This document shows positions 35,907-63,500 of a DNA stretch of 64,000 nucleotides, in pieces (the stretch's first letter is position 1; each line of letters opens with the position of its first letter). Origin of the DNA: Orbicella franksi. Taxonomy: Eukaryota. A program made the translations under genes and the position numbers. A model generated the notes under the pieces. The model did not search any database, was not told the origin of the DNA, and saw nothing but the letters and a program-made list of their open reading frames with translations. The stretch covers positions 2,232,001-2,296,000 of the forward strand of contig OZ116700.1 of assembly GCA_964199315.1 (NCBI GenBank). The letters run 5' to 3'.

Positions 35907-38900
35907 ATGGCGGAACGGGAAGGAGAACCAGCCAGGAAAATCGCGTTTGTTGGCAACAGTCAGCAAATGCTGCGAGACATTAAACAAAGTTTGAGGCACC
36001 TAAAAAGGCAACCTGAGCAGCAGCGACCAGAGGCAACTAGGATTTCACAACAACCGGCGACTTCAGCCGGGTCCAATTCGGTTACCGTTGGAGAACCGAA
36101 CGCAACCAGACCCTTGGCACAGAATCCAAACCGCCGGATAAGTCATGCGAAAGCTTTGGCTGAGATTAGGAGCAGTTTAAAACCCTTCGAGACTACAGAG
36201 TCTGGCTATTCCTCCTGCTCCGAAAGCGGAGAGTCAATCAACAAACAGTTTTTTAGTACACTCAAGGCTCTGGGCTTCGATGAGGTATGTATCATGGAAA
36301 CTGCACTTTCAATTTAATACGCTTTTCTTTGCTATTAGGTCATGGGATTCTTATGTTCTTAATGTTTCATTTTTTGATGCATATGTATTATGGCTTCGCC
36401 GCAAATTGTTCACGCCGATTCGTCAACGGGTTTACAACGATAAATTCATACCGTACATGGATGTCGTATATTTACATCTCCATAAAATACACAAGAGGGA
36501 TTTCTTTTGTTCCTCATTACGTCGCTTTTCCTGCCATCGCTCGATTTGCAACAGATGTCATCATGTTTGCGGGCAAATATAGTTTCATTTAAAGCTGATC
36601 TCCTCGATCGCATCTGCTGTCTCGTGTGTTTTTTTGCCGCCGGTGGATTCGCGTTATATTTCAACACCGCTGCCTCGCATTATCTCAAGCATTTCAACTC
36701 TGTGCCAAGTTGTAACTTTGCTTCAAAGTTTGAATGTAGTTTGCCCGGAAACTCGGGTCAAAGGGCTGGCTCCTGTAGATTCTTTTCGATTTCTGGCTTT
36801 TATTTTGTTGCTTTGAATAGCCGTCGTTAATTTCATGCCTTCCTTTCAGTCACGCGGATAAGTGCACGTGAGAACGGACACAAGTGAATGATCATGCGTT
36901 TCAAATCGAAAGTTTCTAAAATTTAGCTTTCTTTCTTGTCTCCGGCTGTAAAACCAGCACTGTGCTTAAATGAACAGGAGGGAAGGAGCTCGAAGCCCTG
37001 AGTTTTCATTACTTGAGTACCCATTTGATATGCTTCAGCTTAAAAATAGCTGCCAAAATATGATGATTGAATATCAAATTACGAGACATTTTTGAAATCC
37101 CGGAAAATCTTTTATGTTGACCAGTTGATTGAAATCCGTGCTATATTGTAAAACACATGTTTTCTATTTCTGTTTTTCTGGGTTAATTACATTTCGAAAT
37201 GTTACATGTCATAAATCTGACAGTCCAATGTGATCTCTTATTTCAGGAGACAGCCACTGAAGCCATAAGACTGACTTCTAACAGGCCTTTGGAGGAATCA
37301 TTAGACATCATTACACAGTTGGCAACAGCACAAGGCTACAACAGAGTAAATTTTGGCTCAAATGCTTCAAATAATAATCGCACACAACTCCCTCCTCCTT
37401 ATAATGCTGCAGTCCATCGCATGTCATGGAAGGGCTCAGAAGAATCACTGAACAGTCCTAAGCGAGCTGAGTCCCCCATGATAGCCATGGAAAGTGCAGT
37501 GCCAATGGTACATCCTCCTAAGAGTACAGTTACAAGTTTCAGTGGACAGGCCAGTGGAAGGGCATCTTCATCAGAGGCCACAAGGGCTGAATGGCATGTC
37601 CAAAGGAACCCCGCATTGGTTGCACCACAACCTTGGCAAGGCGCTCACATGCCAGTGCCTCCTCAGCAAAGATATGTGGAGCGAACTGGTCCAAACATGC
37701 AACTCGGATGGAAACCAGTGACTGTATCTGGTCCGAAACCAGTTCAAGGAATCAGTCAAAATCAAACTCAACATGTTAACAGTGCTGTTGGAAATCCTCC
37801 ACCACCACAATTTCATGTAACTGCAAACCTTACTTTAACTGGAAGTAATTCTGGTAGCGAGAACTTTCAAGGGGGGAGAATGGGAGCAACATGTGCAAAT
37901 GTATCGTCCAGTGGGGCAAATGCCATGTCCTTCAACATACTTGTTCAAACTAATTTTCCACCAAGTTCATCTGGAAGCATCCAATCATCAAATCAAGGAC
38001 AATTTTGTCAAACCTCACCTCAACGCCCCAGTGTTGTTCAAGGATCACACAGTGGTGATGTGTTATGTCACTCTCCTGTACCAAGTACATCTCAGGCTCC
38101 AGTGCCGCACTTTGTACAGTCATTTGACCCAACACTTCATCCTCCACCTGCGTATGCTCCTGTACCAAGAAGACCATTCCCATGTTCAGATGTTAGCATG
38201 TCAGAGACCACCAGTAATTGGCAGAATCATATCCCGCGTGTTTCATCAAGATCACCAGTTCCTCCCCCAGCTCCAGAACAGTGGAGGCACTCCTGGAACA
38301 CAGAAACATCATCAAACTCTGGATCCATCAGTGATGAAATGCCATGGTCTAGTTCACATAATGACAGTGGGCCTCCGTCGCCATTGTCAGACTCATCATT
38401 CACAATAGAGGGTCCAACAAAGGTAACAAATCCAACTGGGACTGTTGTTTACCGTCTTGACTCACCTAATTCTCGTAAACGACCTCCAATTCCAACCATG
38501 GATGGTCAGGAGAACAGACTACCAACAATGGAAGATGATGACCAAATGTCGGAGTCTGATATGGAAATGCTCACTCCAGAACAACGATATAAACAATTCA
38601 GAGACAAAAACTCAAAACTAAAGAAATGTTCTCCAGCAGCGACAAAATTTTACTTTGAACAACACTTTGAAAATTTAATGAAGGACACAGAGGAAAGACA
38701 GAAGAGACGCTTCCAGTTAGAAGAGGAAATGCAAAAAGTTGGACTTTCTCAGGATGCTAGGAACCAAATGCGACAAATCCTAGTGCAGAAAGAGACCAAC
38801 TATAACCGCTTAAAGAGATCAAAAATGGATATAACAATGTTTGAGAAAATAAACAAAATTGGAACTGGTGCATTTGGAGAAGTTTGGCTCGTCAGAAAAG

Positions 38901-40520
38901 TAGACACAAACATGTTGTATGCCATGAAAATCCTACGGAAGACTGAGGTCCTGAAACGCAACCAGGTAGCTCACGTTAAAGCTGAAAGAGACATTCTTGC
39001 AGAGGCGGACAATGAATGGGTTGTTAAGTTGTATTACTCATTTCAAGATGCAAAATTCTTGTATTTTGTGATGGACTACATTCCAGGTGGAGACTTGATG
39101 AGCCTTTTGATTAAATTTGAAATCTTTCCTGAGGATCTGGCAAGATTTTACATTGCCGAACTTGTGCTAGCGATTGAGTCGGTGCACCGAATGGGATTTG
39201 TTCATCGTGATATCAAACCTGACAATGTGTTGATTGACAAAGATGGTCACATCAAACTCACTGACTTTGGTCTTTGCACGGGTTTTCGCTGGACACACGA
39301 CAGCAAATATTACGAGAAGGATGGTCATGACAGACAGCCAAGTATGGAGTATGGCATGCTCCCATGGGATCTTCCTCCTGAGTGGAATGATCATCTGATA
39401 CAGAAGTCACTATTAGAAATGAAGCCACTGGAAAAGCGGCACTTTCGTAAGCACATGAGAAGTCTTGCCCATTCCTTAGTGGGCACACCCAACTACATCG
39501 CGCCAGAGGTATTGCAAAGGAGTGGTTACACACAGCTTTGTGATTGGTGGTCTGTGGGAGTGATAATGTATGAGATGCTTGTTGGACACCCACCATTTCT
39601 TGCCTCCACACCTGCAGACACTCAACTCAAGGTAAGGAAACACTACTTTAAATTTTCAGATCTTTCTTTCAGTGGTAGCAAAGTTTGGCCATTGCGATGG
39701 GATAGGCTGACTGTCCCTGAGTGGTAGTCAAAATTCTCTCTGGACCATACTGATGTATCTTGTCAGCTGGTCAGCTCTCCACCCCCTCCCCGCCCCTTCC
39801 CAGCTTGGATCTGTGCCTTGTTCATTACCCAAGTTCCATGTTATTTTTCTTTGTTGTTCCATATCATCATTATTTCTGTCTTAAACTATATTATATCATC
39901 ACAGCTATTCCTTCTCAGCTCATTACCAATTATTTATTAATGCTTACATATAAACTCCCCTGTAGTTCCCCCCATATAGTTTCCTTACAAGTTGGAGAAT
40001 ACCCCACTTTGTGGACTCTTTTGTTTGTACTAATTAGTAATGGTGATAATTTTTTGTGTGTGTTTAGGTCATCAACTGGGAAGCAACACTGCATGTCCCC
40101 AGGCAGTCCCTTAGCTGGGAGGCCAGAGACTTGATCTTGAAGCTCTGCACAAGTCCAGACAGAAGGCTTGGGGCAAATGGAATTGAAGAAATTAAACAAC
40201 ACCCTTTCTTTGCTAATGTGGACTGGGGCTTTGGTGTGCGTCGCATACAAGCACCATACCGTCCACAGATCTCCTCCCCAACAGACATATCCAACTTTGA
40301 TCCAGTTGATGAATCAGAGAGAATGAGCAGTGATGAAGAAGCTGCTCCTGTTGCGAGTGAGCCAGTACCACCCAGACAGGGCCGACACCCTGAGCATGCA
40401 TTCTATGAGTTCACATTTAGAAGGTTTTTTGATGACGGTGGAAACAGCTATGTATCAGCGCGCAGATACTCTTCTGATGACAGTGGCAGTGACACTAGCA
40501 AAGAACCAGTGTATGTTTAA
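35907..40520 (+). CDS. LATS: Serine/threonine kinase LATS/Warts (Hippo pathway), ~1071 aa
   Basis: Exons 35907-36284, 37247-39631 and 40068-40520 (GT-AG, phase 0). Features: N-terminal KALAEIRSSLKPF, UBA-like region, PPxY motifs (LPPPY, PPAY), MOB-binding region, GTGAFGEV, HRDIKPDN, DFG, activation loop HSLVGTPNYIAPE, hydrophobic motif FYEFTFRRFF and C-terminal PVYV. Confidence 0.98.
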
Positions 40521-41299
40521 TGTATCAAGTCTGTGTCCAGTCTTAGATTTGTAGCTGTTATGTGTAAACATGAGCTGGAAAGTAATATTAGCTCTCAATT
40601 GTTCAAGTTAATAGTCTTGTGCTATGGAAGGGAATGCGTAAATTTTATCGCAGTTAGAATTTGGCATTTCCCTTTCCCTTTCTTACCTGTTCCTTTTTTT
40701 CTGAAATTACCATAAATGGTCTGCTTTTCCAAATTTTTTTTTGAACTTCAATTATTTATTAGAAATCCTGCAATGTTTACTTCTTTCTCGTTGTTTCTCA
40801 AATTTTACTTTGAGTTGTTTAGTTAATTTTGTAGTAACACACAAAAATGTATAAAGTGGGATGTGTGGAGTCAAGTGTGGTTCTTATATGCCACCGTGGC
40901 ACTGCTGACCACTTTGCCTGTGGAACCACCAACATGTGGGAAGTCAAACTTGACTTACTTTCACAGGAACAGTTCTCAGCTGGTGAGCAATAGTCACATG
41001 GGCTGCAACAGTTTCCCAGTCAGTATCAGTAACTATAGGTCGCTTACATGTCAGGCATGCAATCACTACACTTGATTTAGTTTATTCAGTTCCATGATTT
41101 CTCGACCACTTATGTCCCACAATGGTAAATTTATGAAAAAACAGGAATATTTTAATTCTATCAAAGAAAGTTATATCACACTTTGCGTGCCTCAAAGTAA
41201 GACTTGTAGCACAAACACTTTTACACAAAACACTTACTAGAAACCTTTTTTAAGAGGAGGAACATTTTCCTTTTCAACATTTTGTAACCCTGAAGGCGG

Positions 41300-44100: not shown

Positions 44101-44479
44101 ACGCCGAGAGATGGAGAAAAACAAGCAGAAATCGGAAATCGGTGATATCACTACTGAGGAACGCACGTGCTCGGACATGCTACTTCCTGACAAGAAGTCT
44201 AAACTCTTGGCGACATGTTTTATTCAATTATCCTTATCTGTATTATTATCTTAATCAGAATCTCGGAGCCTTCGGGTCTGAGTGACAGTCAGGGCTACTT
44301 AATTACAAATATTCGCCTCACATGCCTTCCAGCAAAGTACATTTAAAGCCGGTCAAATTCTTTTAATTGTCATTTAGTAGCTAAAAAGTAGTGAGTATCT
44401 GCAGACCAACAAATACCTAGAAAAAAGGGTTGTTTACGACTTAACGTTGTGTTTGCTTCATTCTGTTTTTCTCCGCTGC

Positions 44480-45700: not shown

Positions 45701-46367
45701 AACATTTCACAATGAAAAGATACCGCTGGGCCCTTAAATGCTAAAATAACAACGTTTTCCTGTCTCTTTTCTCTCTCGCCTTTATTCTTTGAAGAGCAAG
45801 TTCGCCAGTCCTTCAGACAAGGATTATGTCCGGTTCTCACAGCGTGAAATAACTGGTCTTCGTCATTATCAGCAATCCCTCAGTATCGAGTAAGATGTCA
45901 ACTCGGTATTATTCAGTAAAAGGTTGAAAGGTAAAGTTGACCGCTCAGAGTATGTATTTTTTTTCACCAAAGAAAACTAGCAGTTGGCGGTATTTCTGTA
46001 AAGTTTGACTATTAAAGTGGTGAAAGATACCGAGATATAATATTTGCCATGATTGAATTGACTTTTGTCACCACCAAACCATCGACTGCACTCGAACGTT
46101 CTACCGCCGATGCAACATTTTTTTACTATCCAAACGGAAACGATCGAAATCAGTCAAACTGAAGAGAACAAGACACAAATTGGAATAACTTGGAGTTCAT
46201 ACCAAAATTTCCCCACACAGCGTTGCCTTTTTTTTTCCCAAGGAGCTGATCAACGGATATCGACACTGTTAAGTAACCAATCATATGATACCGTAAATTG
46301 TTTCCCTGCCATGCGACATCAATCCATATTCACCGGCCGCAGCAGATATAGGTCCATATCAACCATG

Positions 46368-49300
46368 TCAACCAAGAAACTTCGGCTCCTCCGGTCTGGG
46401 TAAGTCTCTTTTCTTAACAATTGCGTAGTCACTATAAAATTTCAAAACCGCAGACAAGGCCTCCTGGTCGAGTTGGTAATGTTTAGCAAGCGTCTCTGCT
46501 GTCCATGTGTCGGGATCCTCCAGTCTTTTCGCAAACAGTTCCGACAACTGAACGTTGGTTATTTTCCCCTTGGGCACCTGGCCGATTTCAGCAGGACCCC
46601 GTGACTCACGAGACATGGGTAGACTCCTTTTTGTTTCGGCGCTTCTCGTGATTGGCTGAAAGAAGTGTCAAGTGTTTTGATTGGTCAAAGAGTTCACCAA
46701 TAAGGGAACTAGCGACTGAAATTGGCGAAATGCAAAATTATCACAAAATGATGCAAAACATCTCGCTGGACATAAATGTGCAGGTAGCCATTTAAAAAAA
46801 AATACGTTATGCAACCTTTGTATTCGTCATGACACCATGCAGTTATTTAGAAAATATGGAAAAAATAACATATCCTTTCTCATATCACTATTAGTCCTAG
46901 CTCTAAGCTATACCAGTTCCCATGGTTAGACCTATTTATTCACTATACTGGCTGGCATATCACACTGAGCTGCCTTGCACCAAGCTTCTAATTAGTTCAC
47001 ACTCCTCTACCTGAAATCACTAGCTGGCGTACAGATATTCCGTGCTAACTGCATCCGCTTGCTATTTGCACCATTGAGTCATAACTAACTGACTTACTGT
47101 ATGCATTCCTTTTCACTTGCAATCTTCCTGTAATAGTATTCACTCTACAGGGCTGCAAATAATTTTTTTCTCTTGAAAGGACATTTGTCCTACTAAGACA
47201 CCATCTTGGTCAGACAAAACAAATAATTTATTGTGGTTGGACATCACTGAAAAAGGAAAGATTTACTCAATGTAGATTTTTACTCATCCTTACCATAAAA
47301 TGATTTACGATAAAAAATTGTCTGGACATAATGTCTGACAGTTGGCATTTTGTTGGACATGAGCAAATTTTGGTCAGCCAATGCCTGATGACCAACTGTT
47401 ATTTGCAGCCCCGCTTTATGTTCTCACTACTTTTCTAAAACCCAACCCAGCTTTATGGGTGAAAGGGCACATTGGCATGAATAGACTGTTACAAAGCATG
47501 CTAACAGCTACACCTGCGGGGCTCGAAAAAAGTGTGTCCGGCCGTCCGGGACTATTATCTGCATGCAGCCAGGATGCGCAAAAAGCTCTTTGTAAAAGAA
47601 CACTTGCTAAGCAGACTAGTCCAGAACAAGTAGATTTTCCTATTGGCAAGTAACTTTTTATCCTCACTTGCCCAATGGGAGAGGGCCCAGGCAAGTTGTC
47701 TGCCAACTAAATAACAAAAAGTAATCTAAGACTTGCCCATGGCAAGTAAAATGTGAGAGCTGCTTGTCCGAAAGGTAAGCTGGAATTCAACTTTCTTTGG
47801 AGCCCTGGACCCATACATTTAACCAGTCAAAATGTTTCCCAAAATGTTAATTACGAAGTCTGTTGGCTCATTCTGTAAAGAGTTCAGGAAACTATCTGGG
47901 AGACAATGAAAAGATGTCTGCAGTCTTTCAAAATATTATAATAAAACTGAATTAATTCTATGTTAAGTGGAGAATTGCATTTTCACCATTCATTATGCAA
48001 TCTCCCCCTGCAACATGAACGTTCTTTCAGAAACCAAGAAATGTATGTGCAGGAATAGAGTGTGCTTTTGATTTGTTATTATTTAAAAGCCAGTGATGAT
48101 CTTACAGATAGCAACCTTAGAAAAAAACATTTTAAACTGCTGAGGTACACAAACATGCCTCTTCCAAGAGTGATTTAAATCTAATTTCTCTTCCTATGCT
48201 ATCAATACAGTTTAAACAGACAAGTGATGAGAATAAAGAAAAGAATCTACTCAGGTGATATTGTTGCCTTGGTTTACTACCGAATGCTCAGAGTTAATAC
48301 TAAAAGATGTTTATACTGTGATACTCAAGTAAAAAAATAAAAAAATAAAAAAAAAAATAAATAAATAAAATAAAATGCTTACCATTTGTGCTGGAGCTTC
48401 CAGTGTATCAATTTTGAAATCTTTGAGTCGACCTAAGAACTCATCATCTTTTCTATCTCTTTCTTTAAACAGTTCTTCATTTTCTGGAAATAAAAGGTAA
48501 ATAAACTTGCTGCATACTATGAACTAAAATTGAATTCTTAAGTTCTTTGGGAAGCACACAGGACACTGAAGAGGAAATATGACCCAAGATTAATACAATA
48601 CCCCAGCCAAGCTCAAGTAAACACCTCTGAATCTGATGCAATAGATGGACTTATGCAATAACTATTAGAGCTTGTATACAAGCTCTCTACCTTGGGATTA
48701 GACAGCTCACAGGGTAAAAAGAGGGGGAAGGACAAATCTTTCTTTCTTTTCCCTTTCTCCCTCCTCTACCTTGTCTTTTTATTTCCTCTTTTTATTTAGT
48801 CTTTTTCAATTGTTAAATAGCATTGTTATATGTTGCATTGTATTTTAAGCCATGATTTGTCGACACAATGCAATATACTTTAATTATACAATTGGCACTG
48901 TGAAGTCTTTAGCCTTTCCTTATCTTATTCATAAGCAAATAGAATGCCAAGATAGAGAAGATACCGGGGGGGGGGGGGGGGGGGGAATCCTGTATAAAAA
49001 GGACGGCAGGTGCTTGTTGGAAATTAGAACCCCTTAGAGGTACCAAGACCCTGTTTTGTGGGGGGTGGCTTGAAATCTTTTTCACTCCTAAAGTAACACA
49101 TTAACTAATACTGCTTTTTTTTTGCCTCAATACCCTAAACAGTACTGTGAAAGCCCCTGCTGTGGGTCCTTCCCAGGCTGAACACCCTGAGAGATACCAA
49201 ATCCGCTTTTTAAAACCCTAAAAGGTACGACAAGCACCCCCGGGAAGACACGGCGGGAACAAAATGGAATTGCTATGTCATTCATACACTGCAAACCTGC

Positions 49301-49654
49301 AAAGTTGATTGGATTTATGACCAAAAAAAAGAAGTTCTGTCGCGTATTTCAGTTACAGAAATGTCTACAAAATTTATCTGCGATATCTACATGGAGAGAT
49401 TATGGAATTTAAGTTAAAACTTAGTTAAAATCAAACTATAACTGCACCGGATAGGAGCATGTGATACCTCGCGACGAGCTGCAAGGTAAAATTTGCTCAA
49501 AGTACTCACGTTTTCGCGCATCAGCTAATACAGCCTGGGAGCTGGGATGACTTGGAGCTACTTTTGGTTTGTTTTCCAGTATTTTATCCACTCTCCGTTG
49601 TGTTTCAAGAGGTTTTTTTATAAAACGAGTTGCTCGTGAAATTCTGGCCCCCAT
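46368..49654 (-). CDS. NDUFAF4: NADH dehydrogenase (ubiquinone) complex I assembly factor 4, 177 aa
   Basis: Exons 49654-49510, 48483-48383 and 46655-46368 join in frame (534 nt). MGAR N-terminus, KPKVAPSHPSS, RKDDEFLGRLKD, VPKGKIT and PDTWTAETLAKHYQL match recalled NDUFAF4. Confidence 0.92.
47148..47413. mobile_element. hAT-like MITE
   Basis: TIRs cagggctgcaaataa and ttatttgcagccccg; no intact TSD. Confidence 0.7.
47516..47807. mobile_element. hAT-like MITE (degenerate)
   Basis: Ends gcgggctcgaaaaa and ctttggagccctg; internal cttgccc/gggcaag repeats. Confidence 0.55.
48963..49244. mobile_element. MITE with CCGGGG...CCCCGG termini
   Basis: accggggg(n) at 48963 and cacccccggg at ~49235-49244. 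Confidence 0.6.
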
Positions 49655-50294: not shown

Positions 50295-50365
50295 ACGTGT
50301 ACTTTCAATGCACTTGGATCGAAGACAGCACATCCAAAAAACCCTACAGACACTAAGTTACGTTG

Positions 50366-53300
50366 CTACGACAACGGAGCGAAGGACGCAGCACTCGTAC
50401 ACAGACGTCTGTAGGTGCTGGATCGCCGGGATAAAATCCTTGGACGCGCTGTTGAAAAAGACAGACCGCTCCGTGATCTTGAAGGACAACATGAACTTCG
50501 ATCTTTCGGCGAAGAGAATGGTTTCCTTTTCCGGTCTTTTGGCCTGGCGGCATTTCGACACGAGGATAAAGGTCTAGTTATTTTCTGTATGAGTCCATTC
50601 GTTAAAGCAATTTCGTTCAGGGTTTTCTTGTAAGACACTATGTCCCTAAGGAAGTGAGGTAATTTCACGCAGTCCTGGCGCGCGATGCGCCTGATTCTTC
50701 TGAGTTCATCGCAACAGATTTTTCCCGCGTAAAGGAGCTTGAAATCGATCTCGTTGACTTGACGCAGAATCATGACAGCTCCTACGGTAAAAAGAACAAT
50801 TTGAAGGTAACTGCGTTATAATTTATTCACATTTTACTGCCAAATTTTACTGTCTGTCACTGTACACCAGAAGTCCTGGTATAGACTGATTTTAAACCTT
50901 CAAGTCTGACGGCGTGAATTTATTTTGTTCACGTGACTATGGGAACCACGTTTCGACAGGTTTCTAAGAGTATTTAGAGGAATTCTACTGATAAAAATGC
51001 TGCAATCTTATTGGCTGAGCTACTCGCAAACTATCAGCCAGTAGCGTTTTCTCGTTTGACGAGTGCGCGCACGTACACAACAGGAAAGATTCCAAACGAC
51101 AAATCAGCCCGCGCGATTTTTCTGAGGCGAAAACAATTGGGAATGGTCAGCTGAAGAAAATTTAAATAAGAATTCTACTGAAACAATTAGATTATTAGCC
51201 CTTGAGTTCTATGAGGTGATAGTTGACTCCACCTTCGGCCTCATCAACTATCTCGAGCTCATAATCTAATCGCTAATTTACTATGTTTTACAAGTTGTAT
51301 GATCTTCCGACTTCCGCGGACGCAACACAAGTTATAATTAATACAATCGTGTTCTTTCACACCCTGGACATACCTTCGAAATAGCACTGATCGTATCCAC
51401 AGCCCCCTATATCGCTACAGTCTGACAAGCAGCGCTTGGCTCGTACCACCTGCTTCCATCGCTGCTCTGGATCGTAAATGTATATTGCCAGATGCTCAAA
51501 CAGTTCCTTGAAAGACATTTCAATTGACATACACGCAGTATCTGAAATATAGCAGTGTCAAAATTACGGTAATTGCAAAGCAATCCCATTTTAGCAATGT
51601 CCATTTTTTACTCCGTTACAGATCTTTTACGGTTTGGCTAGGTTTCGCCTAATGGACTCATCCTATAATATGACCTATTTTGCGATTGAATGTTGTAACA
51701 TTTGTGAAACACAATGGATGATAAATTATTCCCTTATGTTAGAGCGAGATCGTTAATGATTTACAATGGTCATTTTCATACTGGTGGACGCATTACCCGT
51801 CCAGAACGATAATGTGTCCTCGCCGTTTTTATACTAAAGAGGCATTATCCGTCTGGACCAGGACTTGGGTAAACATTTGTAGTTCGTCGGTTATGCGTCT
51901 TTAATATAAAGACGGGCGCAAGACGCATAATACGTCTAGATGAACTATCCTTCGAAATACGTCTTGAACGACGCACTACGAGATACAGAATGTCTCGACA
52001 CATGATACGTCTTGTGCCCGTCATAACCAGATGAACTACATATGTTTGCCCAAGTTCGTCCAGACAGGGGATAATGCGTCTTTAGTATAAAAAGGCCATA
52101 TCACATCTAAGAAATTTAACAAAATTCCTGGTCTTAACGGAAGTTGATAACCACCCCCTCCCCCTTCCGCCCCGTATGCCTGTGCGTAACACAGTTTCAA
52201 GATACGTACAGTACAGTAGAGCCGGTAGAAACAGCATCTTGACTTGCGCTTGATAAATAGTGTTAATAGCCGCCAGTCCTTCTTCATTTACCCTGCCAGC
52301 GTAAGACCTGGGAGTCCGCAAATCAAACTTTTTCCTGTTGGAAAACCACGGTTGCAAACCATCATTCGTAGCACGAAGCTAATGTCGATCGAGGATCACA
52401 AGTCAAGGGCATTTGATTTAGAAGACGATTTGGAATTTTGCTGAGTTTGCTCCCATAATTGCAATAAATGGAAATCAGTGTATGGAGCGTATGCACATGA
52501 CGTCATGGCAGCCATATTAGTGTTCCAGTTAAAACAATGAAACGGCTGCCGTGTCGGTGTACCAAACTAATCCTGTGGGAGCTCAATTCTTTTCTTATGT
52601 GAACACTTTCTTTTGTCCCAATAAATTTGCATGGCCACTGGGCACGTGAGTGAATACGCTCTATTCATGACGTTTATGAAATTGAAATGATATGATGATG
52701 ATTAACAAATATTGATTAAATTAATTAAGCTTACCACCAGTTCAGTTGGTATCTGGTTCTGCCACCAGTCACTACACCACTTTCTATTAAATCCGCCGAA
52801 TATAAGCTTGCTCAGTTGCTGTTAAAAATGTTGCAACAGGCAGCTTATCTTACCGAGAAAACTTTTAATGGATAGGTTCTCTGCAGGTCTTCCTCACAAC
52901 AAAAGTATGCCACGGATTCAGGCGAATTGATGACCTTGCTGTTCATTCGCGTGTAACGCGAAGTGTGTGTGTACATTTCACTAATCGAGATGAACCGGCA
53001 CTTTGTTGGGTTTATGAGCACGTGATATCACGCAGTCGCTTCAGAAAAGTTTGGATGTGATGTATTCAGAAAGCTTGGAAATCTTAAAACATGTCCGATC
53101 GAGTAATCGAATGATCGGAAGCCTTTTTTGCTAGGTACATTTTTCTTGAAAATTGTCAAAGTGGTTGACACCTGTATAAACAACAGAAATATGTAAACAA
53201 AGAAAACATTACAGGACAATCTTGTTTACACACCGTTAGATTCTTATCTTGTGCTTCACACACAAATCTTCATTCTGTGAGCAGAAACCAAAGTTTTTAT

Positions 53301-54274
53301 CAAGAATCATTCCTTTTCAGCTGATTTTAGCAAGAAGTCGAAGAAACGTCAATTTGCAGTTCTTTGATCATCAATTCTTTGATCACAAAAGAGCAACTAC
53401 CAGCACCAGAAATTAAAACTTTTTGGCAACTCGTTGTTCCAAGGAAATTCCAACATACCCCAAGCGAAAAATATGTCGATAGCAGTCAATGTCACAGACA
53501 TAACAGATATCGACACCCGCAGTGAAGCATGAAACCACATTTTAATTTGATTAAATAAATCTCACCAAGATATTTCAAATGTAAACAAAAAAATTACTTT
53601 AAGCTCCTTATATAGACCTAATAACATATAGCCCCTAAAGACTTCAAATTTTGACTCTTACTCCAAACCAGTCAAATGAAAAGTTAGCACAAAAAGGATA
53701 CGAAATGCGTCCCAATTTCATGATCCATCAAACCTTTTATCCCATGTTCTCGAAGGTACACATTTTCATTGCTTTTCTTGAGCCACAGAGTGAATTTCCG
53801 TGCTTCCGGCCGGTTGTATCGCACATTAGGTCCCTGCCATAACATCTTTCCACTGCAGTTGAGATCGTTTGTCCAGAAAACGCTTAGCGAACCATCCAAA
53901 CCATGCGATTTTAAATACTGTAAGACTGTCTGCGATGCTTGACCAAGCGAAATCCTCTCTCCAAATGCCGCGTCCAGAAACACATCCCCACTGCCATAAA
54001 CATCTCGCACGCGTTCTAGAATGTAACGCGCTTCTTGAAAAAAATCGAATCGAATCTCAGCTTTCTTCTTGTTTATGCCCAGCCAGTCCACGGCTCCGGC
54101 AAATGTGAAGCGGGGCACCTTACCGAACTTGAGGAAATTTTCTTTTTCTTCTTGTAGATTGTTTATGTGGTCATTCGATTGGTACTTCAATGGCGTTTCG
54201 CGCAAAATTTTTACCGGCGTCTTGACCGACTGATCGGGCGCGTTGCCCATTTCGCTCTTGTCCGAGGAGGGCAT
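50366..54274 (-). CDS. MATCAP: Microtubule-associated tyrosine carboxypeptidase family protein (MATCAP/KIAA0895-like), ~441 aa
   Basis: Exons 54274-53702, 52378-52210, 51541-51374 and 50781-50366 join in frame. Motifs: HEIGTH (HExxxH), QPW, EEGLA, ALLYYT, MSFKELF, RW..VRAKR, DQCYFEG, IDFKLLYAGK and PHFLRD. The start codon is the first in-frame ATG (inference). Confidence 0.9.
51183..51270. mobile_element. Short palindromic MITE remnant
   Basis: ttagattattagc...gatagttgac / tcaactatc...ataatctaa inverted arms. Confidence 0.5.
51826..52093. mobile_element. Foldback element with ~70-bp inverted arms in MATCAP intron 2
   Basis: tttttatactaaagaggcattatcc-gtctgga...ttgggtaaacatttgtagttc pairs with gaactacatatgtttgcccaa...tccagac...ggataatgcgtctttagtataaaaa. 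Confidence 0.75.
52482..52664. mobile_element. Harbinger-like MITE (AGAGCG..TCAC family)
   Basis: Ends ggagcgtatgcacatg and cacgtgagtgaatacgctcta; internal gccatattagtgttcc / aaacggctgccgtgtcggtgtacc. Superfamily assignment is from memory. Confidence 0.6.
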
Positions 54275-54495
54275 CCCTGAATGGGACGGCAGAGAGCGAT
54301 ACACCAAAGCAATTTATCCTGACAGCATTCAGAAGTGGGATTTCACGGCGTCTCCAGCTGATTCGTCGACTTCATTTATGTGTGAACGAATAAAACTATT
54401 ACAGCTAATTACTGTCGTTATGGAAACTTTCAATCTCAATTAGTGAGCTTAGTGACCACGCGTGTACCTAGCAGGCCAGGTTACAGGCATTCAAC
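54275..54495. promoter_or_regulatory. Compact bidirectional promoter (MATCAP-like / EEF1AKMT1) with a perfect X-box
   Basis: Divergent ATGs at 54274 (-) and 54496 (+). GTCGTTATGGAAAC at 54414-54427 is a 14/14 X-box match. Confidence 0.65.
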
Positions 54496-55111
54496 ATGGC
54501 GGATTGCCAGAGTGCAAGCGACCAAAAGGTATGTTAGGGGTATGTTACAGTAACTGTTTCTGAGACGTACCCGTCACAAGTCGACTTCTTTATCAAGATA
54601 TTTTCTCGTCAGCTAGTCTTTTTTCAAACTGAAATTTCTGCTTTCTTTAGTTTGGCGTGCACAATCGATCAAATGGCTATCTCAATTCATGCTTAATTGT
54701 GCACGTGCGTCAGTGTCGTCCGAATTTTGTGTCACTTTCCTTAGCATTCGGCTTGAAAAATTGTAGAACGTTACAAAATCATCTTCTGTCTTAAAGGTGC
54801 ATGCCGTACCACATATTATGCCCGGATGATCCGATCTAGTGTTGTCCTTAGCTTTACAATGCACAGGTAGCTAGTCCAGGCACCGTACCATCCAATATTT
54901 TTTAGTGCTACGAGATATAGGCGACATTCTTCTGCTGTGAGACGATTTCAGCTGCTACAACTGTACAGTGACTTGAATATGAGGTGGTTTACAAATGAGC
55001 ATTTTCTTTGGGCCTTGCTTCCTCTAACTCTAAAGTTAGCAAGCCAGTGGCCTCGGGGTGGGGTGGGGGGGTACTTTAGGAATTTCTGGGTGGGGATGTG
55101 CCACTGGGACC

Positions 55112-55142
<31 letters not shown>

Positions 55143-58100
55143 CAGCTGAATTTTGCTACCCTATACTAGAGTAAACTCCCCAAATCCCCCCATCTATCGA
55201 CACTGTTGAGGCTGATTTGCATAAATTTAAACTTGCCGATTTGATTTTTTTATATTTTTGAGTGGCAATTCCTGGTTTCCTTAGTCTAGATCCTGGTCTA
55301 GATAAAATCGTCAACCAACTAGTCAGTTTTGTGAAAAATGATACCCTATTCTAGAGCCAAACACTCTGATTTATATACCCTATCCTAGAGTAAACTGCTG
55401 GAATACCATACCCTTAACAGCAACACATACCTATATAGCTCATATATGGCAGTGCCCACCCGGGCCAGTGGCCCAGGGCAGGGAGGGGAGTCCCCTATAA
55501 AAATGATGGGGATACACCCACAAAACAAGTCTGGAACCTTCTAGGATTTCTCTCAAAACATTCTGACATTATATGTGGAAAATAATCAGTTTACAAACTA
55601 TTATAAAGTTATACTAAAGAATATAAGCTACAAAAATCAACTGGAATTGTATGATTGCTGTGTGGGAGCCCACAGCCTGTGTGGAGGGGGGTGGGGAGGA
55701 GGGGGGGAGACAGATGATATACCACCACATTCTGAAAACTTAAGAAGTACATGCACATGGAAAACAGTTTTATTATCAGTTTGAACTTGAGACTAAAACT
55801 ATTCCAGTTGTCTTTTTGATAACTGATAAAATTATATTGGGTAAAAACACAATTGCTAGTGTCCCACTGTAGTTTACAGTGTGGCTCTCACTAAGCAAGG
55901 GTATATGGACCTTATTTACATGGATGTAGTACATATACTGGAAATCCAGAAAAGTAATTGAATATTATTGGCTCACTGTCAAAAGTGTCATTAATGATTA
56001 AATTGGCTAGTTTGATGGTCCCCAGAGTCTCCCATTTAACCTACCAACAAATTTATAAAAATTATTACTCAACATGTAAAGAACATAAGTTACTAAATAT
56101 TCAACGCTTTTCCATGTTTTGATGTATGAAACTGTTGCCTCTAGGGTAAAGAGCCAAATGGAAGTGACAATGAGAGTGATGATGACGATATCCCTCAGTT
56201 ATCGGCACATGCCTTGGCAGCTTTGCAGGAATTTTATGATGAACAGAAAACTTTAGCATCAGAAGAAAAAACCCTTAAAATAGATGAGGACTGGGTACGT
56301 TATATCAGATAGAAGACCAGGTATAGGTCTGCGTCAGGCCAATGGCCCATACTGCAAGAGCTTATTCCAGTTTCTGTAGCATGCAGTGACTAGGAGTATT
56401 ACTACTCCCCCCTGAATGGGATGCTTGGCCATCCCAGAGTTACCCCCCCCCCCCCCCCAGCATTAAATTGCCGGTACTCATTTGTACACATGGATGGTGA
56501 GAGACACTGTGAGAGTAAAGCATCCTGCCCAAGAACACAATGCAATGCTGGCCAGTGCTTGAACCTGGACCACTTGATCTGGTGCACTCACGTCAACTAT
56601 TAGGCTAATGGAGGTTAACCCTGGAATAGAGGAAAAAAATTCATCATCATCATCAGTCCTCATCACGCCATCGGATGGATAAGGCCTTCACAGTCTCTCT
56701 TCAGTGCAAACAAACAGAGGTACAGAGGAATAGAGGAAAAAATTACAGAAGGAATAACTCTCTTACAGTTTGTCACTGACAACTAAAAATTCCCTCTGTC
56801 ATAAATGGCTAAACAAATCCAGACTAATGAAGAAGCATTATCAACCAGACAAGTAAAGAGGATAACAATAAAAAGGAAATCATCAACCACCAGATTAAAA
56901 ATGTTTAATTAATATGTATACCATAAAATTCTCAGAACTCACCTTGAAAGAAATGTATGGTTACTGTAAGGAGAATTAAATCTCTGAACTTCATTCTTAA
57001 AGGGTTTAAAAAAATACAGTTAAAAAATTTTTAATTATTAAAAACAATTGTTTTATTATTCTTCTAGCAACTCAGCCAGTTTTGGTATGATTACAACACA
57101 GCTTCTGTTTTGGCAGAAGAAGCTCTAAGAGCATCAAGCAATGGCAGGTGAGGAAATTGCCCAGGGAGGGGCACAGCTTGTCCCCTTGTTTAGGTGTGAA
57201 AACTGAAGGATTGCCAAACACCATTATTTTTAGCTGTCAAAGTGTCTTTTAGGGTGTACTCAAAGAAGTAACAATAAAACGCTCTCATTTCCATTTTTAG
57301 GCTCGATTTCTGCTGGTCTCCAGTCCTGTCTACTAGCACGGGCTCCCTTCCTGAACAGTGGCTTTGGATCGAGCCTTCCATTTTAAATTTTTATCTTTTA
57401 GGGGTCAGGTTAAGCTCAGGTCACCCCAGATCGGTCTAGGGGTTTAATTCAAATTTTCCAATGAGCATCCCTGACCTTTTTGTATGGGAGTCATGGCCCC
57501 CCTCCCTTTGGGAAATTTTCAGTTAGGTTGGTGACAATATTAATAACAGACAGCTGTCAAATCCAGCACACTATTTAATCTTGATCCTCCACCTAATTCT
57601 CAGAACTGCCATTAAAAGAAGTGTTTCTTAATCAGTAAAGAAATAAACAATGTTGGTCATTCTACAATGTTCTTCTGTTTCCAGAATAGCTTGCCTTTGC
57701 GCACCAACTTTGTACAAGAAATTACTGAGCACCAAGCCTGAAGGATGTGAAGCAAAAATATTTGAATACGACAGACGATTTTCTGTGTTTGGTGAAGATT
57801 TTATATTCTATGATTACAAGAAACCGCTTGACTTACCAGCTTCCATCACTGAACACTCCTTTGATCTGGTGTTCGCCGATCCTCCTTTCCTTTCAGAAGA
57901 ATGTCTGACAAAAACTGCCGAGACAATAAAATATCTTGGCAAGGAAAAAATAATTCTTTGCACTGGTAAGGACAATTTGTTTCCAGCTCAGTGAATCATT
58001 GAGTCAGTTGCTGAGATGATTAACTCCATGATTCATGGCAGGCAGTCACTAGAGGAGTATGCTTCTCCCCTTAGATGGAATGCTATGTCATTACTGAGCA

Positions 58101-58735
58101 GCTTCTCCACCCACCCCCCCCCCCCACCTGCCTTTATTGTTAAGTTACCTCAATTGTACATTTTTATGTAGTAAACAACTCCATGTAGAGAATGATAGTG
58201 AATGTATTGTCCAAGGCCATTGCTCTTGAAGAACACAACATTAGGCTAAATAAGAAATCTAGGACACTAGCCATCTTACAAATTCACACCAGGGAGTTTT
58301 ACCTTAACCAATGGTTGGAAAGCAAACTAGACTATAATTTTCCAAAATTTCAGTTGGTTTGAGGAACTCCTGTTGTCCCCAGTTAGTATGAACTGTCAGA
58401 AAATTTCATACTATTTGTTCTTCTCTCCTATATATCCAGTCTCTAGTGTTATAAATTATTATTAATGGTACATTCTGTTACTTTGGATGGGTTTCATGAT
58501 GTTGGAAAAACACTAACCATTATACCAACCACTTTTCTTGGCAAATGGTGAACACCCCTGACTCCTAATTTCCTTACACCATGCTTTTTTTCTCTTCACT
58601 TTAGGGGAAGTTATGGAAGACCTAGCATTCAAGCTACTCAGAGTAACACCTAGTACATTCCAGCCAACACATGCTAGGAATCTGGGAAACAAATTTGCTT
58701 GTTTTGTAAATTATGATAGTGACCTTAATAAATGA
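54496..58735 (+). CDS. EEF1AKMT1: eEF1A lysine methyltransferase 1 (N6AMT2), 224 aa
   Basis: Exons 54496-54528, 56145-56294, 57068-57147, 57685-57965 and 58605-58735 join in frame (675 nt). Motifs: DDDIPQLSAHALAALQEF, EDWQLSQFWY, RIACLCAPT, FEYDRRF, FIFYDY, DPPFLSEECL, ILCTG and FQPTHARNLGNKF. Confidence 0.95.
55050..55465. mobile_element. MITE of the GGGGGGTACT...CCCGGG type
   Basis: Starts cggggtggggtgggggggtact and ends cagtgcccacccggg; internal duplicated ccctat(a/c)ctagagtaaact. Confidence 0.55.
56340..56612 (-). mobile_element. tRNA-derived SINE (MIR-like), near full length
   Basis: The reverse strand reads gtccaggttcaagcactggcc...ttgtgttcttgggcagg...ctctcacagtgtctctc...atgagtaccggcaatttaatgctgggg...taactc...gggagtagtaatactcctagtcactgcatgctacagaaactgg; homologous to 17565-17662. 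Confidence 0.75.
56642..56726 (-). mobile_element. 5'-truncated RTE-type LINE 3' end
   Basis: The minus strand encodes (W>stop)RETVKALSIRWRDED* followed by (GAT)n. An ~18-bp TSD GGAATAGAGGAAAAAA(A)TT lies at 56623-56641 and 56727-56744. Same family as 22533-22577. Confidence 0.8.
58040..58240 (-). mobile_element. Degenerate MIR-like SINE fragment
   Basis: gtcactagaggagtatgcttctcccc...ggaatgcta and ccaagg...gaagaacacaac resemble 56340-56612. Confidence 0.4.
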
Positions 58736-58933
58736 CAAAAACTGTCAGTAGATAATGCCAAGCTCACTGATGAATACTGCTATTTATACCATGGCACAGA
58801 AAAGTATAGCCATTCAGAATATAGGAAAGCCATTGTATATTCGACAGTCTTACATCAAACCTTCCCATCATGTGCTGTGTATATGTCGCATTGATTGTGC
58901 TGGCCACTGTATTTTCTATACCAAGGTATAAAA

Positions 58934-59099
58934 TAGTTATGAACACCATCTTGTGGTATAACCATGGAATATCTTACTTGTCAGTTTTTTTTTCCTGGTA
59001 TATCCACAAGTTTTTAGGCAAACTTATGTGTATAATGAGAAAATACAAGTGACTTGTGGGATATTCCATGGTATACCACGCAAAAACGTTGCATAACTA
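58934..59099. mobile_element. Palindromic MITE (TAGTTATGCAAC...GTTGCATAACTA)
   Basis: Inverted arms gtggtataaccatggaatatc...ttgtca and tgacttgtgggatattccatggtataccac. Confidence 0.75.
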
Positions 59100-60878
59100 G
59101 TATATACTAGTATATATATGAATTATTTCATGTATACTTCACATCACTAGTATATACTGTCGGAAAGATCCCAAGCTAATTGTTTCCCATCAAAGTAAGT
59201 TATGCAACACAAGGAAAAGCAACTTAAATTAAATATTTGGTCTAAAATAGTTTATTTTACAATTGCTTTCAAAATAGAGAAGCAGCAGTGAAAATAACGA
59301 TCATAACTAATTTTCATGCAAGGCAATGTTTGATGTGTTAAGAGGATGTATACAAATTCAGGCAGTCTGTCTAGTATATGTTTGGATGTAATTTTAACTT
59401 GATGTGAATTATCTTTTATGAAAATATCTAATTTACATTTTGTTGAAGAGGTGTAATTTTCTCGGTTTGTACAGTAACACTGATGAAAGGAATTATCCTT
59501 TCAGCTGAAAGAGCTCTTAAAAGTAGTGACCCTCTAAATGTACAAATTTTATGGTCATTAGCAAACCCCACAAGTAGTGACACACAGAAAGTAATAAACA
59601 TTGCAAAGTAGCAGTCATCGGAAAGAAGAGACCTCAAAGTTCATTGGACTTGAGAAAAACTGGAAATAACGGATACGAGACACTGATCCAAAATGATCTT
59701 ACATAGTTTGATTCACATAACTCATTGTTAACTAATGGTAATGTTTCTCTTTTTGGTGTATTTGATGGCTTGGCCCACTTATGGTACAAAATTTAGCTGC
59801 ACAATAGTAGAGATTGGACCCTGGAAAGTTACAACCCTCTGGAAGTAGTCACTGGAACGGGCTGGTAAATCCAAAAGTTGCGAAGGCCATTACGGTCAGA
59901 AATTTGGGAGAAGCATTTTCTAGTTAAGGTGGTTTAAGTACTGCATATTGTTTTAGACTGTACATAATTGGTACTTGTTGTTGCAGCAACAACTTTTAGC
60001 ACATGAATCACAGGCCTATCAATTCAATTTAATTTTTGCACACAAACTTTGATGAGTCTTGAAATCAATTTACTGTTTATTTGAATTTAAATTTATACAA
60101 ATGTCTACTTTTGTTAATAATAAAGAATAAAGAAAATAGCTTACCTACATATTTGTAAAACAGTTGTAACAGCCAAATCAAGAGAGTTCCCTTGCTACCT
60201 TTTTTAAAAAAATACCTGTCCTGCTTTTGCCTGATAATACTAGGATTGGTGTTGTCTTTGTTGAAAATAATCAGAAAATTGAAGACCTGAGTACAAAATG
60301 AGGTACACATGCAAATATTTTGGGACAAAAACACTTTTCCCATTTGAAGGGTTGACTGGAAAAAGACCCTACATGACATCTGATAGATGACGAGATTCCC
60401 TTCACAAATTGCTTTCTGCTTCCTTCTACGAAAAAAGGAGAATTTGAAATGAGATCAAGAGTCATTTAGGGCTTTTTTCCACACACCTTATGCATAGGAT
60501 AACCAGTGATACCAACATGAAGTGTGTTTCTGAAAAGAGTATTTGCATTTGAAACCGTCTTGGTCAGAGGAAGAAGAAACCTTAAAGCTCTAGTGAAATC
60601 CCATCTCCAACAACTGATTTGAATCTGCAGTATTTATTGCCAAAGTTGCAAAAGTATCCAGCCTCATTGTGGCTTGTGGCACTGACAGTTTTGGAGTACA
60701 TGTATCTGTACCAAAAATGGTGACTGTATGAATATCATCGTCGTAAATGTAGTAGTTACTGATTCAAGTTATGAGATGTCTATCCTCCCAAATTATGCAA
60801 TGTTAACTGTACAGTAATACACTCAAGTAGTAAAAGCTATGAACATTATTAATAATATAATAATTATAACAAAAGTGA

Positions 60879-63500
60879 TCATCTGATGACGAGATCTTTG
60901 ACAATAAAAATAGCTTCACAGTCACTTCCACTTAACAAGTGTCTTGATTGAATATCCAACGAATTGATTGACAGTCTGTTATAAGGAAGTAGTGAAAATG
61001 TCTCCATTTTATGTTTTGTCGCGTCCACTGATAGCCAAGGGCTTATGCTGTCATATCCTCCACCCACGCCCGCACCATTACTAATTCCACTGAAGTGACT
61101 TTTACTGGCACCTGCAAACCCTGTGATGTTTTGGACTGCCACAGATGTACCATCCCAGTGCCAAAGAGATCCATCTTCTGAACATGTGAATAGGTTGTCT
61201 GGACTAAGAGGATGAAACCTGACCTCCCATACTGTTAAAAAAATAAACAAAACAGAGAATTCACAGCTATGAACTGCTATTTTACAGCTTCAATAGTTAA
61301 AAGGACATGCCAATCCACTCACTATCGCCTCATGGATCCACAGCGTCATGCTATGACGAAATTCATGATCAATAACAGGAAAGATGCATGAAAAACTGAC
61401 ATCAATTTGTTAAATATCAAATTAGAGGAGGCAACAAAAATCATGGATCTGGGTAAAACAGTGTTGAAATCTAGCACCCTTATGATGAGTCACCAAGTCT
61501 CATCTTTTCTGAGTTTCATTCATCTCTGAGTCTTAAACTATTTTGACCTTGGATTTTCAAATGAGGATCTTTGGTGAAAATTTCGTAGTCAAAGGTTTTA
61601 ATAAAAGCACAATTTTTTCCCCAAACTTTCTATTTTCTCCATAATTCTGCCCAATTGTATTCAGTATTCAGCAAACATGGAAATTAGGAAACAGGAGATT
61701 CGATAACCAGCTGGGACACTGTCCTTGAATAATAATTTCCTGTTCATTTCAAGATTAGACCCACCTGACCCAGGGCTACTTTTTTCATAAATATACTTCA
61801 AGACATTCGCGTGAAAAGTTTCCAACATTGATTTTTTTCTGAGACTTTTACCACTGTAAGATGATGAGTTACTTATGTCAGAAATGTAAAAAAAAAAAAA
61901 AAATGGGGGGTCACCGACTTCGTTTTGGAGAGAACATGCCCGGAAGAACACCCTAAATCTGAAAAAAATCGGACAAAATATTGCAATTAGATCTTTGAAG
62001 TGAAATGTTCTCTGGCAAATATTGTTTAAGTGGATCTATTGCATGAATTTAGTCAACTGGTGAGGTTCCTTAAAGAACAAGTTCGCATTTAGAGACCATA
62101 GTTTTATGCACCTTGCAGCCGCAAGATGCTAGGATTCGATGTCCTATGGACAGAAATCTTGAATTCTTTTTAACTTCCAACATTGATTTTTTGTTCTTTT
62201 TTGGACAATGTGGAGATAATTGTAAATAAAATCTGTTTCTGGAAAGAAAAGTAGGGGTCACCGAACGTCACCGAATGTCCAAGATCGTAGAATCCAAGTA
62301 AAGCTATAGGATGTGCAGAAACAATTAGCGTGAACATCCTTAAATTACAATGATATCACACATCTCAAGGTCTACAAGGACCAGATTCAATTTTCATGGC
62401 CTTAAACTTTTTTTTAAACTTCTGTTCAATTTATTTCAAGGTGCATATCAAGTCAGTAACAGCTTATAGGTCCAGCATATTGATCACAGAATTCATTGAC
62501 CATAAAGTAGAACACAGCACTTGTCTTACTTTCTGCGGCATGTGCCTCCAGTAGTGTGACAGGATACAGTTCCTGTCTCATGTCCCAGATGCTCAGTACA
62601 CCATCTTGACCTCCTGCTGCCAGTAGATGTGGCTGGGTCGGATGTTTGTCAACGCACAACAATGAGACACGATCACCAGAACTGCCCAAAAAATAACACC
62701 GTCACAGAGTTGCTTAGTACATTTCTTTGCATACTTAGGAAATTATTTCAATCTACTTTTTTGCCAATTAAAGTTTTATTCTTGGTAAGTAAGTGTACCA
62801 AGGCTTGGACAATCGGAATGAAGTTTTGTTTTAGGTAGGCCATACCATGGGATTTAAGAACATGAAAGCTTCTGATGCGTCTATCAGAGCTCAAATAAAT
62901 ACAATGTACATGTACGTGTATATAAAACTGGATTTATGAAAAGGCATTAATGAAAAGTGCATTCCATGAACTAAATGAGCTACCCAGTTTGATTTCCCTT
63001 TCGGATGTTAATATATATATTCTATGAACCTGCACTCAGCACTTACAGTAGCATTGTTCTTCCAGGTTTATCAATTGGTTGTCGAAGATCCCAAACTTTG
63101 AGCTGACCACCGAATGTTACTGCAGCTACTTCATGCAATTTTGTAAATTTGATACTGTTTATGGTTGTGCTATCTGCAGAATCTAGGAACAAACCAAATA
63201 AAAAATGACCATTATTTTAATAAATTTATAATGCTAAGAAAATCTTGGATAAAATTTTGGACTAGCAAACTTGTATATAGAAAAAAACAAAGCACAAAAA
63301 TAAGGTTAAATGGATATGATTCCCTTCTTACCTATTGTTCTGACTGGATGTCTATGATCAAGTTTCAGAACATTGATTTTTCCATCTTCACCAGCGCTTA
63401 CAATTTCTGCTGAGCTAGCATTTGTGGAAAGACACGTACATGAACAGCTGCGATCCCCAATGTGATGAAGAGTATTCCACTCATGCTCAGGTCTTATGGA
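60879..63500 (-). CDS. NUP43: Nucleoporin Nup43, last four exons (5' exons beyond the window)
   Basis: Exons 63500-63332, 63173-63047, 62681-62530 and 61231-60879 join in frame. Motifs EIVSAGEDGKIN, GQLKVWDLRQ, CVDKHPTQPHLLAAGGQDGVLSIWD and WEVRFHP..DNLFTCSEDGSLWHWD match the recalled NUP43 WD40 repeats. Confidence 0.95.

Follow-up and report, generated by a model that had tools for sequence, protein, structure and literature searches.

Does the single LATS kinase gene of a stony coral lie among neighbours that human divides between its LATS1 and LATS2 loci, and, if so, what has kept them together? The question is raised by a 64,000-nucleotide stretch of the Orbicella franksi genome (C3:2232001-2296000; assembly GCA_964199315.1, contig OZ116700.1), the whole of which is called the window below. 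Chromosome C3 measures 35.15 Mb in a genome of 497 Mb, and neither the window nor the 60 kb on each side of it (120 kb in total) contains an N letter. A sequence-only reading of the window had proposed five genes within 28 kb and had explained them by a pre-bilaterian LATS neighbourhood that was partitioned after vertebrate genome duplication. Domain matches, the annotations of relatives, and RNA revealed all five in the proposed order, starting from 35.9 kb: LATS (+), NDUFAF4 (-), a gene of the MATCAP family (-), EEF1AKMT1 (+), and NUP43 (-). The proposed span was too short, since NUP43 continues beyond position 63500 to about 66.9 kb and has its 5' exons past the end of the window; the true span is about 31 kb. 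Together, these results confirm that the block in the coral consists of real genes in their real order. Its best explanation, which we regard as probable, is conserved ancestral microsynteny followed by reciprocal loss after the two rounds of vertebrate genome duplication (2R).

The evidence for this explanation comes from the comparison of the coral block with the two human loci. The human gene order is GINM1, KATNA1, LATS1, NUP43, PCMT1, and LRP11 at 6q25.1 (PMC12327078) and CRYL1, IFT88, IL17D, EEF1AKMT1, XPO4, LATS2, SAP18, and SKA3 at 13q12.11 (PMC10218699), which bears out the positions of NUP43 beside LATS1 and of EEF1AKMT1 beside XPO4-LATS2 on which the earlier proposal relied. The order EEF1AKMT1-XPO4-LATS2-SAP18 recurs in published maps of chicken chromosome 1 and goat chromosome 12, and LATS1 and LATS2 are whole-genome-duplication paralogues according to the Ohnologs database (PMC7035326). 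Searches of the whole 497-Mb coral genome returned one copy each of LATS, NUP43, and EEF1AKMT1, and no second LATS. NUP43 and EEF1AKMT1 are single-copy genes in human also, where LATS2 and EEF1AKMT1 agree with the coral in relative order and strand. A single coral LATS gene thus corresponds to two human genes of whole-genome-duplication origin, between which NUP43 and EEF1AKMT1 are split, and the simplest reading is therefore an ancestral LATS-NUP43-EEF1AKMT1 linkage divided by reciprocal loss. Since two neighbours of the coral LATS are found next to the two LATS genes of human, this gene neighbourhood is very probably older than the divergence of corals and vertebrates.

The strictest null model considered six genes, those no more than one gene from LATS1 or two genes from LATS2, and placed them randomly on the 35-Mb chromosome C3. 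Under this C3-only null, the probability that at least two of the six fall within 30 kb of LATS was 4.4e-5; it was 2e-7 for placement genome-wide. Unrelated orthologues are thus found close together in two very distant lineages beyond chance, as in conserved ancestral microsyntenic pairs (CAMPs). According to this reading, the cnidarian-bilaterian ancestor would have had one LATS gene with NUP43 and EEF1AKMT1 close by, and NDUFAF4, UTP11, and POU3 would probably have been near as well. Anthozoans and vertebrates, both slow in local rearrangement, would have retained parts of the block. After the two vertebrate duplications, LATS would have been kept twice and each singleton lost from all but one of the paralogous copies, thereby leaving NUP43 with LATS1 and EEF1AKMT1 with LATS2, one gene away. 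The linkage would accordingly be ancestral instead of convergent, and it may have persisted mainly by slow rearrangement in both lineages rather than by any mutual need of the genes.

The identity of each gene was established as follows. Exons of LATS and NDUFAF4 were modelled by tblastn with full-length coral LATS (1072 residues) and with the Stylophora NDUFAF4-like protein. The large exon of LATS matched the Pfam Pkinase domain (E value of 3e-58), and the approximately 100 residues located on the N-terminal side of the kinase matched the MOB-binding domain of human LATS1 in the PDB (4e-21) better than those of STK38L (3e-5) and Cbk1 (1e-4). The translation contains two PPxY motifs within about 470 residues ahead of this regulatory domain and, in the third exon, a hydrophobic motif of the AFYEFTFRRFF type, features like those of human LATS1. 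A regulatory domain closer to LATS combined with the PPxY and hydrophobic motifs places the gene in the LATS/Warts subfamily of the NDR kinases. The third exon is immediately preceded by an acceptor AG and displays a Pkinase_C match (5e-5), and the first exon is also kept in Nematostella and at one further locus (L010). Word-based protein searches with a LATS exon, the LATS regulatory region, and an NDUFAF4 exon returned only coral-like relatives and one Nematostella fragment, and no LATS or NDUFAF4 named as such from an invertebrate bilaterian. No coding exons were recognised between 20.3 and 35.9 kb, upstream of LATS.

For NDUFAF4, the PF06784 (UPF0240) domain was matched at both ends of the protein, positions 1-47 by the first exon and positions 109-169 by the last, in agreement with the name given by NCBI to the Stylophora orthologue (NDUFAF4-like). 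The C-terminal exon of NUP43 had NUP43 as its sole PDB match (1e-26), and the N-terminal exon, aligned with residues 3-41 of human NUP43, likewise matched only NUP43 among PDB structures (1e-6). This single-copy gene thus encodes a WD40 propeller for which NUP43 provides the best and only solved relatives at both ends. The MATCAP-like gene is the least secure of the five assignments, judging from its exon-level matches. Its exons gave only sub-threshold similarities to KIAA0895L (5e-4, with the HExxH motif aligned) and to PF08014 (16.8 bits versus a cut-off of 27), and an exon-wise search of the genome returned no match. The Stylophora orthologue, a protein of 446 residues with PF08014 on record, is 67-89% identical exon by exon, and an RNA-library contig spans 53702-54410 on the - strand, covering exon 1.

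EEF1AKMT1 is defined by a PF10237 match of 118.6 bits (cut-off of 23.2; 3e-34), with one strong locus in the genome, and its best named relatives are the EEF1AKMT1 proteins of macaque, orang-utan, and bed bug (58-62% identity). All four introns were recovered as GT..AG joints in polyA RNA reads and contigs. These joints match the model, indicating that the gene is expressed and spliced as modelled, and RNA contigs extend its 3' untranslated region (UTR) to about position 58920. Two segments, one in the first EEF1AKMT1 intron (55076-55469) and one just past the 3' UTR (59016-59212), had very high RNA depth, loose ends, and variant letters; they are probably repeat or transposon fragments.

Comparison with other invertebrates revealed how far the block is conserved. 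In Stylophora pistillata (LSMT01000039.1), the order and orientation of four genes are as in the window (EEF1AKMT1 <-> MATCAP -> NDUFAF4 -> <- LATS); the comparison covers these four, and NUP43 would fall just beyond the DNA covered. In the assembly ERZ25071792, which is hexacoral-like and has a LATS 66% identical to that of the coral, all five genes are found on one 282-kb contig, where they take up about 40 kb and keep both the order and the orientation of the coral. In Nematostella vectensis (DS469680.1), NDUFAF4 comes after LATS and is encoded on the other strand, the DNA covered reaching as far as NDUFAF4. The five-gene block is thus solidly conserved in stony corals and close relatives, its LATS-NDUFAF4 part extends to sea anemones, and the fast-evolving arthropods, a mite and a bug covered within 10 kb of EEF1AKMT1, are without the block. 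The proposed linkage in other cnidarians and invertebrates was borne out only in part, by LATS-NDUFAF4 in the Nematostella DNA covered, and was not seen in the mite and the bug.

A 261-residue PIFO-like gene sits between LATS and NDUFAF4 in Nematostella (L009:18991-22062, +). Its coral counterpart, composed of seven exons encoding PG-rich repeats and a Cys-rich module, lies upstream of LATS (13643-20221, -) and is inverted relative to Nematostella, indicating that this gene was relocated locally within the block. The identity of the 13.6-20.2 kb gene as PIFO was not retained, as it had neither Pfam nor PDB support. Also upstream of LATS, an open reading frame of 289 residues (9563-10450, +) is kept in Nematostella (L009:4008-5039, +) with 35% identity over 171 residues; its sole lead is TEX33/CIMIP4, which it weakly resembles in a feature-based comparison (score 0.80). 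At a locus with a LATS 55% identical to that of the coral, a gene located 8 kb upstream of LATS (L029:1781-2227, +) matches a coral exon located 75 kb upstream (L023:334-591, +; -39666 to -39409), which hints at a wider conserved linkage upstream of LATS.

Could regulation, rather than slow rearrangement, have held the ancestral block together? Enhancers that act on LATS or on the nearby POU3, as developmental genes, might lie in or beyond the bystander genes, or promoters might be shared, so that breaks would be selected against. The coral segment contains two head-to-head pairs. The contig of MATCAP-like exon 1 ends at 54410, and a GT..AG joint (54526>56143), present in raw polyA reads and in one contig, places a non-coding exon at the 5' end of EEF1AKMT1. 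The two genes are thus transcribed divergently from starts at most about 100 bp apart, and they are also arranged head to head in Stylophora, with 225 bp between the models. Past the window, the start codons of NUP43 and UTP11 are 151 bp apart, head to head, and the interval is likely to be a bidirectional promoter. In addition, an intronless gene of POU class III, the kind of gene on which long-range regulation typically acts, is located 32 kb past the window, and many conserved pairs have been credited to such constraints by Irimia et al. (PMC3514665). However, both head-to-head pairs are separated in human, and in the coral LATS, EEF1AKMT1, and NUP43 share no promoter with each other, LATS sharing one with none of the paired genes. 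Furthermore, the PIFO-like gene was moved and inverted between the coral and Nematostella while LATS-NDUFAF4 remained unbroken. Shared regulation, which the sequence-only reading had suggested for such a long-lived linkage, is therefore unsupported, since the pairs that share promoters in the coral are apart in human and do not include LATS. LATS or POU3 may be surrounded by a long-range regulatory landscape, but we regard regulatory constraint as an unlikely cause of the persistence of the block.

The intronless POU gene bears on the extent of the ancestral neighbourhood. It encodes 399 residues and is closest to the class III proteins Brn2 and Oct-6, other POU classes matching at 1e-62 or weaker, and it is separated from UTP11 by 23 kb and from NDUFAF4 by 46 kb. 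Exons of cullin-5 were found upstream of the window and an exon of ribosomal protein S4 past its end, so that, flanks included, the coral segment from CUL5 to POU3 covers about 110 kb. Between UTP11 and RPS4, two open frames of 386 and 113 residues were observed (74123-76466; L015:123-1280 and L015:2128-2466, -); they had no Pfam or Atlas match and may represent a lineage-specific gene or a decayed element. In human, UTP11 adjoins POU3F1 at 1p34.3, CUL5 is at 11q22.3, and RPS4X and POU3F4 are on Xq13-q21. NDUFAF4 (6q16.1; old name C6orf66) is about 2 Mb, or two genes, from POU3F2, with MMS22L between these two genes. If these positions hold, the 110-kb coral segment would bring together singletons that human has in four paralogous regions, with LATS (two copies) and POU3 (four copies) as their anchors. 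In a published map of chicken chromosome 1, genes of 11q22 adjoin those of 13q12, the LATS2 region. A bolder proposal is that the segment from CUL5 to POU3 preserves, nearly intact, the core of a four-fold human paralogon (1p34, 6q16-q25, 13q12 with 11q22, and Xq13-q21) as it was before duplication, in which LATS and POU3 would have been kept together by one long-range regulatory landscape since the cnidarian-bilaterian ancestor; we hold this to be quite improbable.

Further genes of the human neighbourhoods are located elsewhere in the coral genome. KATNA1 and PCMT1, for which the sequence-only reading had proposed to check whether they lie just outside the window, are both absent from its flanks: the sole katanin-p60 MIT domain was found at C3:17.93 Mb, 15.6 Mb from LATS, and PCMT is a multi-exon gene on another chromosome (contig C12). 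KATNA1 is part of a second cluster of 153 kb (C3:17779802-17932928), also 15.6 Mb from LATS, with SAP18 (17.84 Mb) and one of the three ZC3H12 genes (17.78 Mb). MMS22L is at C3:1.38 Mb. Human ZC3H12D is four genes from LATS1. The presence of KATNA1, SAP18, and MMS22L on C3, which represents 7% of the genome, has a probability of 3.5e-4 for three single-copy genes, indicating that C3 is the coral counterpart of the ancestral chromosome of human 6q16-q25 and 13q12. Cyclophilin matches on C3 (3.85 and 5.2 Mb) were not assignable to PPIL4, and MRP-63 (MRPL57) had no match anywhere in the coral genome.

This shared chromosome opens another explanation, according to which one ancestral linkage group was conserved as a whole and the closeness of the genes in coral and human arose by independent shuffling. 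In agreement with such a macrosynteny, KATNA1, SAP18, the ZC3H12 gene, and MMS22L are on C3 but 0.9 to 15.6 Mb from LATS, so that much of the human neighbourhood was not kept locally, and the orientation of LATS and NUP43 is not kept. A scan over approximately 10,000 anchor genes would also yield about 0.4 such coincidences under the strictest null, and the probability of 4.4e-5 alone is therefore not overwhelming. Against independent shuffling stand this low per-locus probability and the value of about 1e-7 obtained when UTP11-POU3 and NDUFAF4-POU3 are counted (four of approximately 14 candidates within 111 kb), a value that depends on the human positions of these genes. Irimia et al. (2012, Genome Res 22:2356, PMC3514665) assigned at least 378 gene pairs to the eumetazoan ancestor by inference, and since hundreds of true cnidarian-bilaterian pairs are known, real cases far outnumber those expected by chance. 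We therefore consider coincidence within a conserved linkage group very unlikely. Mis-assigned orthology, for which the weak exon-level assignment of MATCAP could be invoked, or a mis-assembly joining unrelated genes, is extremely improbable and largely refuted by the same gene order in three independent assemblies, the absence of gaps, the RNA joints of EEF1AKMT1, and the specific, strong matches of the single-copy LATS, NUP43, NDUFAF4, and EEF1AKMT1.

Besides the 0.4 coincidences expected from the genome-wide scan, several observations weigh against conserved microsynteny with reciprocal loss. LATS and NUP43 are convergent in the coral with three genes between them, versus a head-to-head arrangement of human LATS1 and NUP43. 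At a cnidarian-like locus with a LATS of 50% identity, LATS-NDUFAF4 is kept and the other three genes are not found in the next 12 kb, and NDUFAF4 is not within 10 kb of LATS at another locus. The EEF1AKMT1 genes of a mite and the bed bug have unrelated neighbours within 10 kb, as do the EEF1AKMT1 loci of two further eukaryotes, and the evidence for the linkage spans hexacorals and vertebrates only. Thus, the proposal of a pre-bilaterian LATS neighbourhood partitioned after vertebrate duplication stands as to the linkage, which is made likely by the single LATS gene, the human gene orders, and the low probability of chance, but the comparison with invertebrates bore it out only in part.

TABLE 1 Features of the LATS segment of O. 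franksi. Positions are those of the window; negative positions and those above 64,000 are outside it
Feature	Position	Strand	Evidence
Cullin-5 exons, 10-14 kb upstream of the window	-14277 to -9997 (L021:5723-6052, L021:9689-10000)	-	PDB CUL5 only, 6e-9
LATS coding exon 1, N-terminus plus initial half of a UBA-like segment	35907..36287	+	tblastn residues 1-133
LATS coding exon 2, two PPxY motifs, MOB-binding domain, most of kinase	37247..39636	+	tblastn residues 131-922
LATS coding exon 3, kinase C-terminal extension, hydrophobic motif, stop	40068..40520	+	tblastn residues 922-1072
NDUFAF4 last coding exon	46368..46658	-	PF06784 at 3e-14; Stylophora NDUFAF4-like residues 80-174
NDUFAF4 middle coding exon	48410..48484	-	Stylophora NDUFAF4-like residues 49-73, 80% identity
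NDUFAF4 first coding exon, ATG at 49654	49490..49654	-	PF06784 positions 1-47 at 7e-7; tblastn residues 1-56
MATCAP-like last coding exon, stop at 50366	50366..50800	-	PF08014 positions 309-356 at 3.5e-3; 67% to Stylophora last exon
MATCAP-like coding exon 3, ends approximate	51363..51548	-	89% over 62 aa to Stylophora MATCAP exon
MATCAP-like coding exon 2, ends approximate	52196..52378	-	89% over 61 aa to Stylophora; also in L028
MATCAP-like coding exon 1, HExxH metal site near 3' end	53702..54274	-	PDB KIAA0895L (MATCAP) 5e-4; 86% to exon 1 of Stylophora
Divergent promoter region shared by MATCAP-like (-) and EEF1AKMT1 (+), with the 5' non-coding exon of EEF1AKMT1 up to its end at 54526	54411..54526	.	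RNA joint; MATCAP contig
EEF1AKMT1 first coding exon	56143..56293	+	RNA joints 54526>56143, 56293>57067; kept in L012, L026, L028
EEF1AKMT1 coding exon 2	57067..57144	+	RNA joints 56293>57067, 57144>57682
EEF1AKMT1 coding exon 3, methyltransferase core	57682..57964	+	PF10237 at 3e-34; RNA joints 57144>57682, 57964>58604
EEF1AKMT1 last coding exon	58604..58735	+	RNA joint 57964>58604; PF10237 positions 123-165
NUP43 last coding exon, open segment with acceptor inside	60879..61289	-	PDB NUP43 1e-26, residues 261-375; 82% to L028
NUP43 coding exon, open segment	62456..62701	-	WD40-type matches; 94% over 52 aa to L028
NUP43 coding exon, open segment	63046..63216	-	82% over 51 aa to L028
NUP43 coding exon, open segment	63309..63506	-	67% over 60 aa to L028
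NUP43 three 5' coding exons, past the window (locus L014)	65501-65620, 66449-66655, 66738-66908 (L014:2738-2986)	-	N-terminal exon matches human NUP43 residues 3-41 at 7e-6
UTP11	67060-72330 (L014:3048-8330)	+	Three collinear PF03998 exon matches
Ribosomal protein S4 exon between UTP11 and POU3	78824-79123 (L015:4824-5123)	-	Ribosomal_S4e 4e-18 and KOW
Intronless POU class III gene, 399 aa	95478-96674 (L017:1478-2674)	+	PDB Brn2 2.5e-84, Oct-6 2.4e-81

The coral segment provides a compact outgroup view of the LATS1 and LATS2 loci before the vertebrate duplications and ties them to the neighbourhoods of POU3F1 and POU3F2. It can be used as an anchor for reconstructing the ancestral chromosome and as a worked case of reciprocal gene loss. 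Knowledge of Hippo signalling is unchanged, no functional reason for the linkage was shown, and the interest of the locus is moderate for comparative genomicists and low otherwise. Textbooks already describe both conserved microsynteny and the reciprocal loss that followed 2R, and the coral LATS block is a new example of a known phenomenon. No paper naming this particular microsynteny was found in a search that did not extend to the published lists of pairs.

The block resembles several known systems. As in the CAMPs of Irimia et al. (PMC3514665), unrelated genes have stayed neighbours across distant phyla, some of them head to head with short intergenic regions. Unlike the members of those pairs, the coral LATS, NUP43, and EEF1AKMT1 are not immediate neighbours, and the evidence comes from hexacorals and vertebrates. 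Nematostella displays the same arrangement of an upstream gene, LATS, and NDUFAF4 on the opposite strand. In human, LATS1 adjoins NUP43 and LATS2 is one gene from EEF1AKMT1, in line with a coral LATS near both. In contrast to the human loci, the coral has one LATS with both neighbours, NDUFAF4 and MATCAP lie in between, KATNA1 and SAP18 are 15.6 Mb from LATS, and PCMT is on another chromosome. Similar to other vertebrate 2R paralogons, the anchor, here LATS1 and LATS2, is kept twice and each singleton neighbour is found beside one copy only. The pre-duplication state is, however, provided here by a cnidarian, an unusually distant yet compact outgroup, rather than by amphioxus or a reconstructed ancestor.

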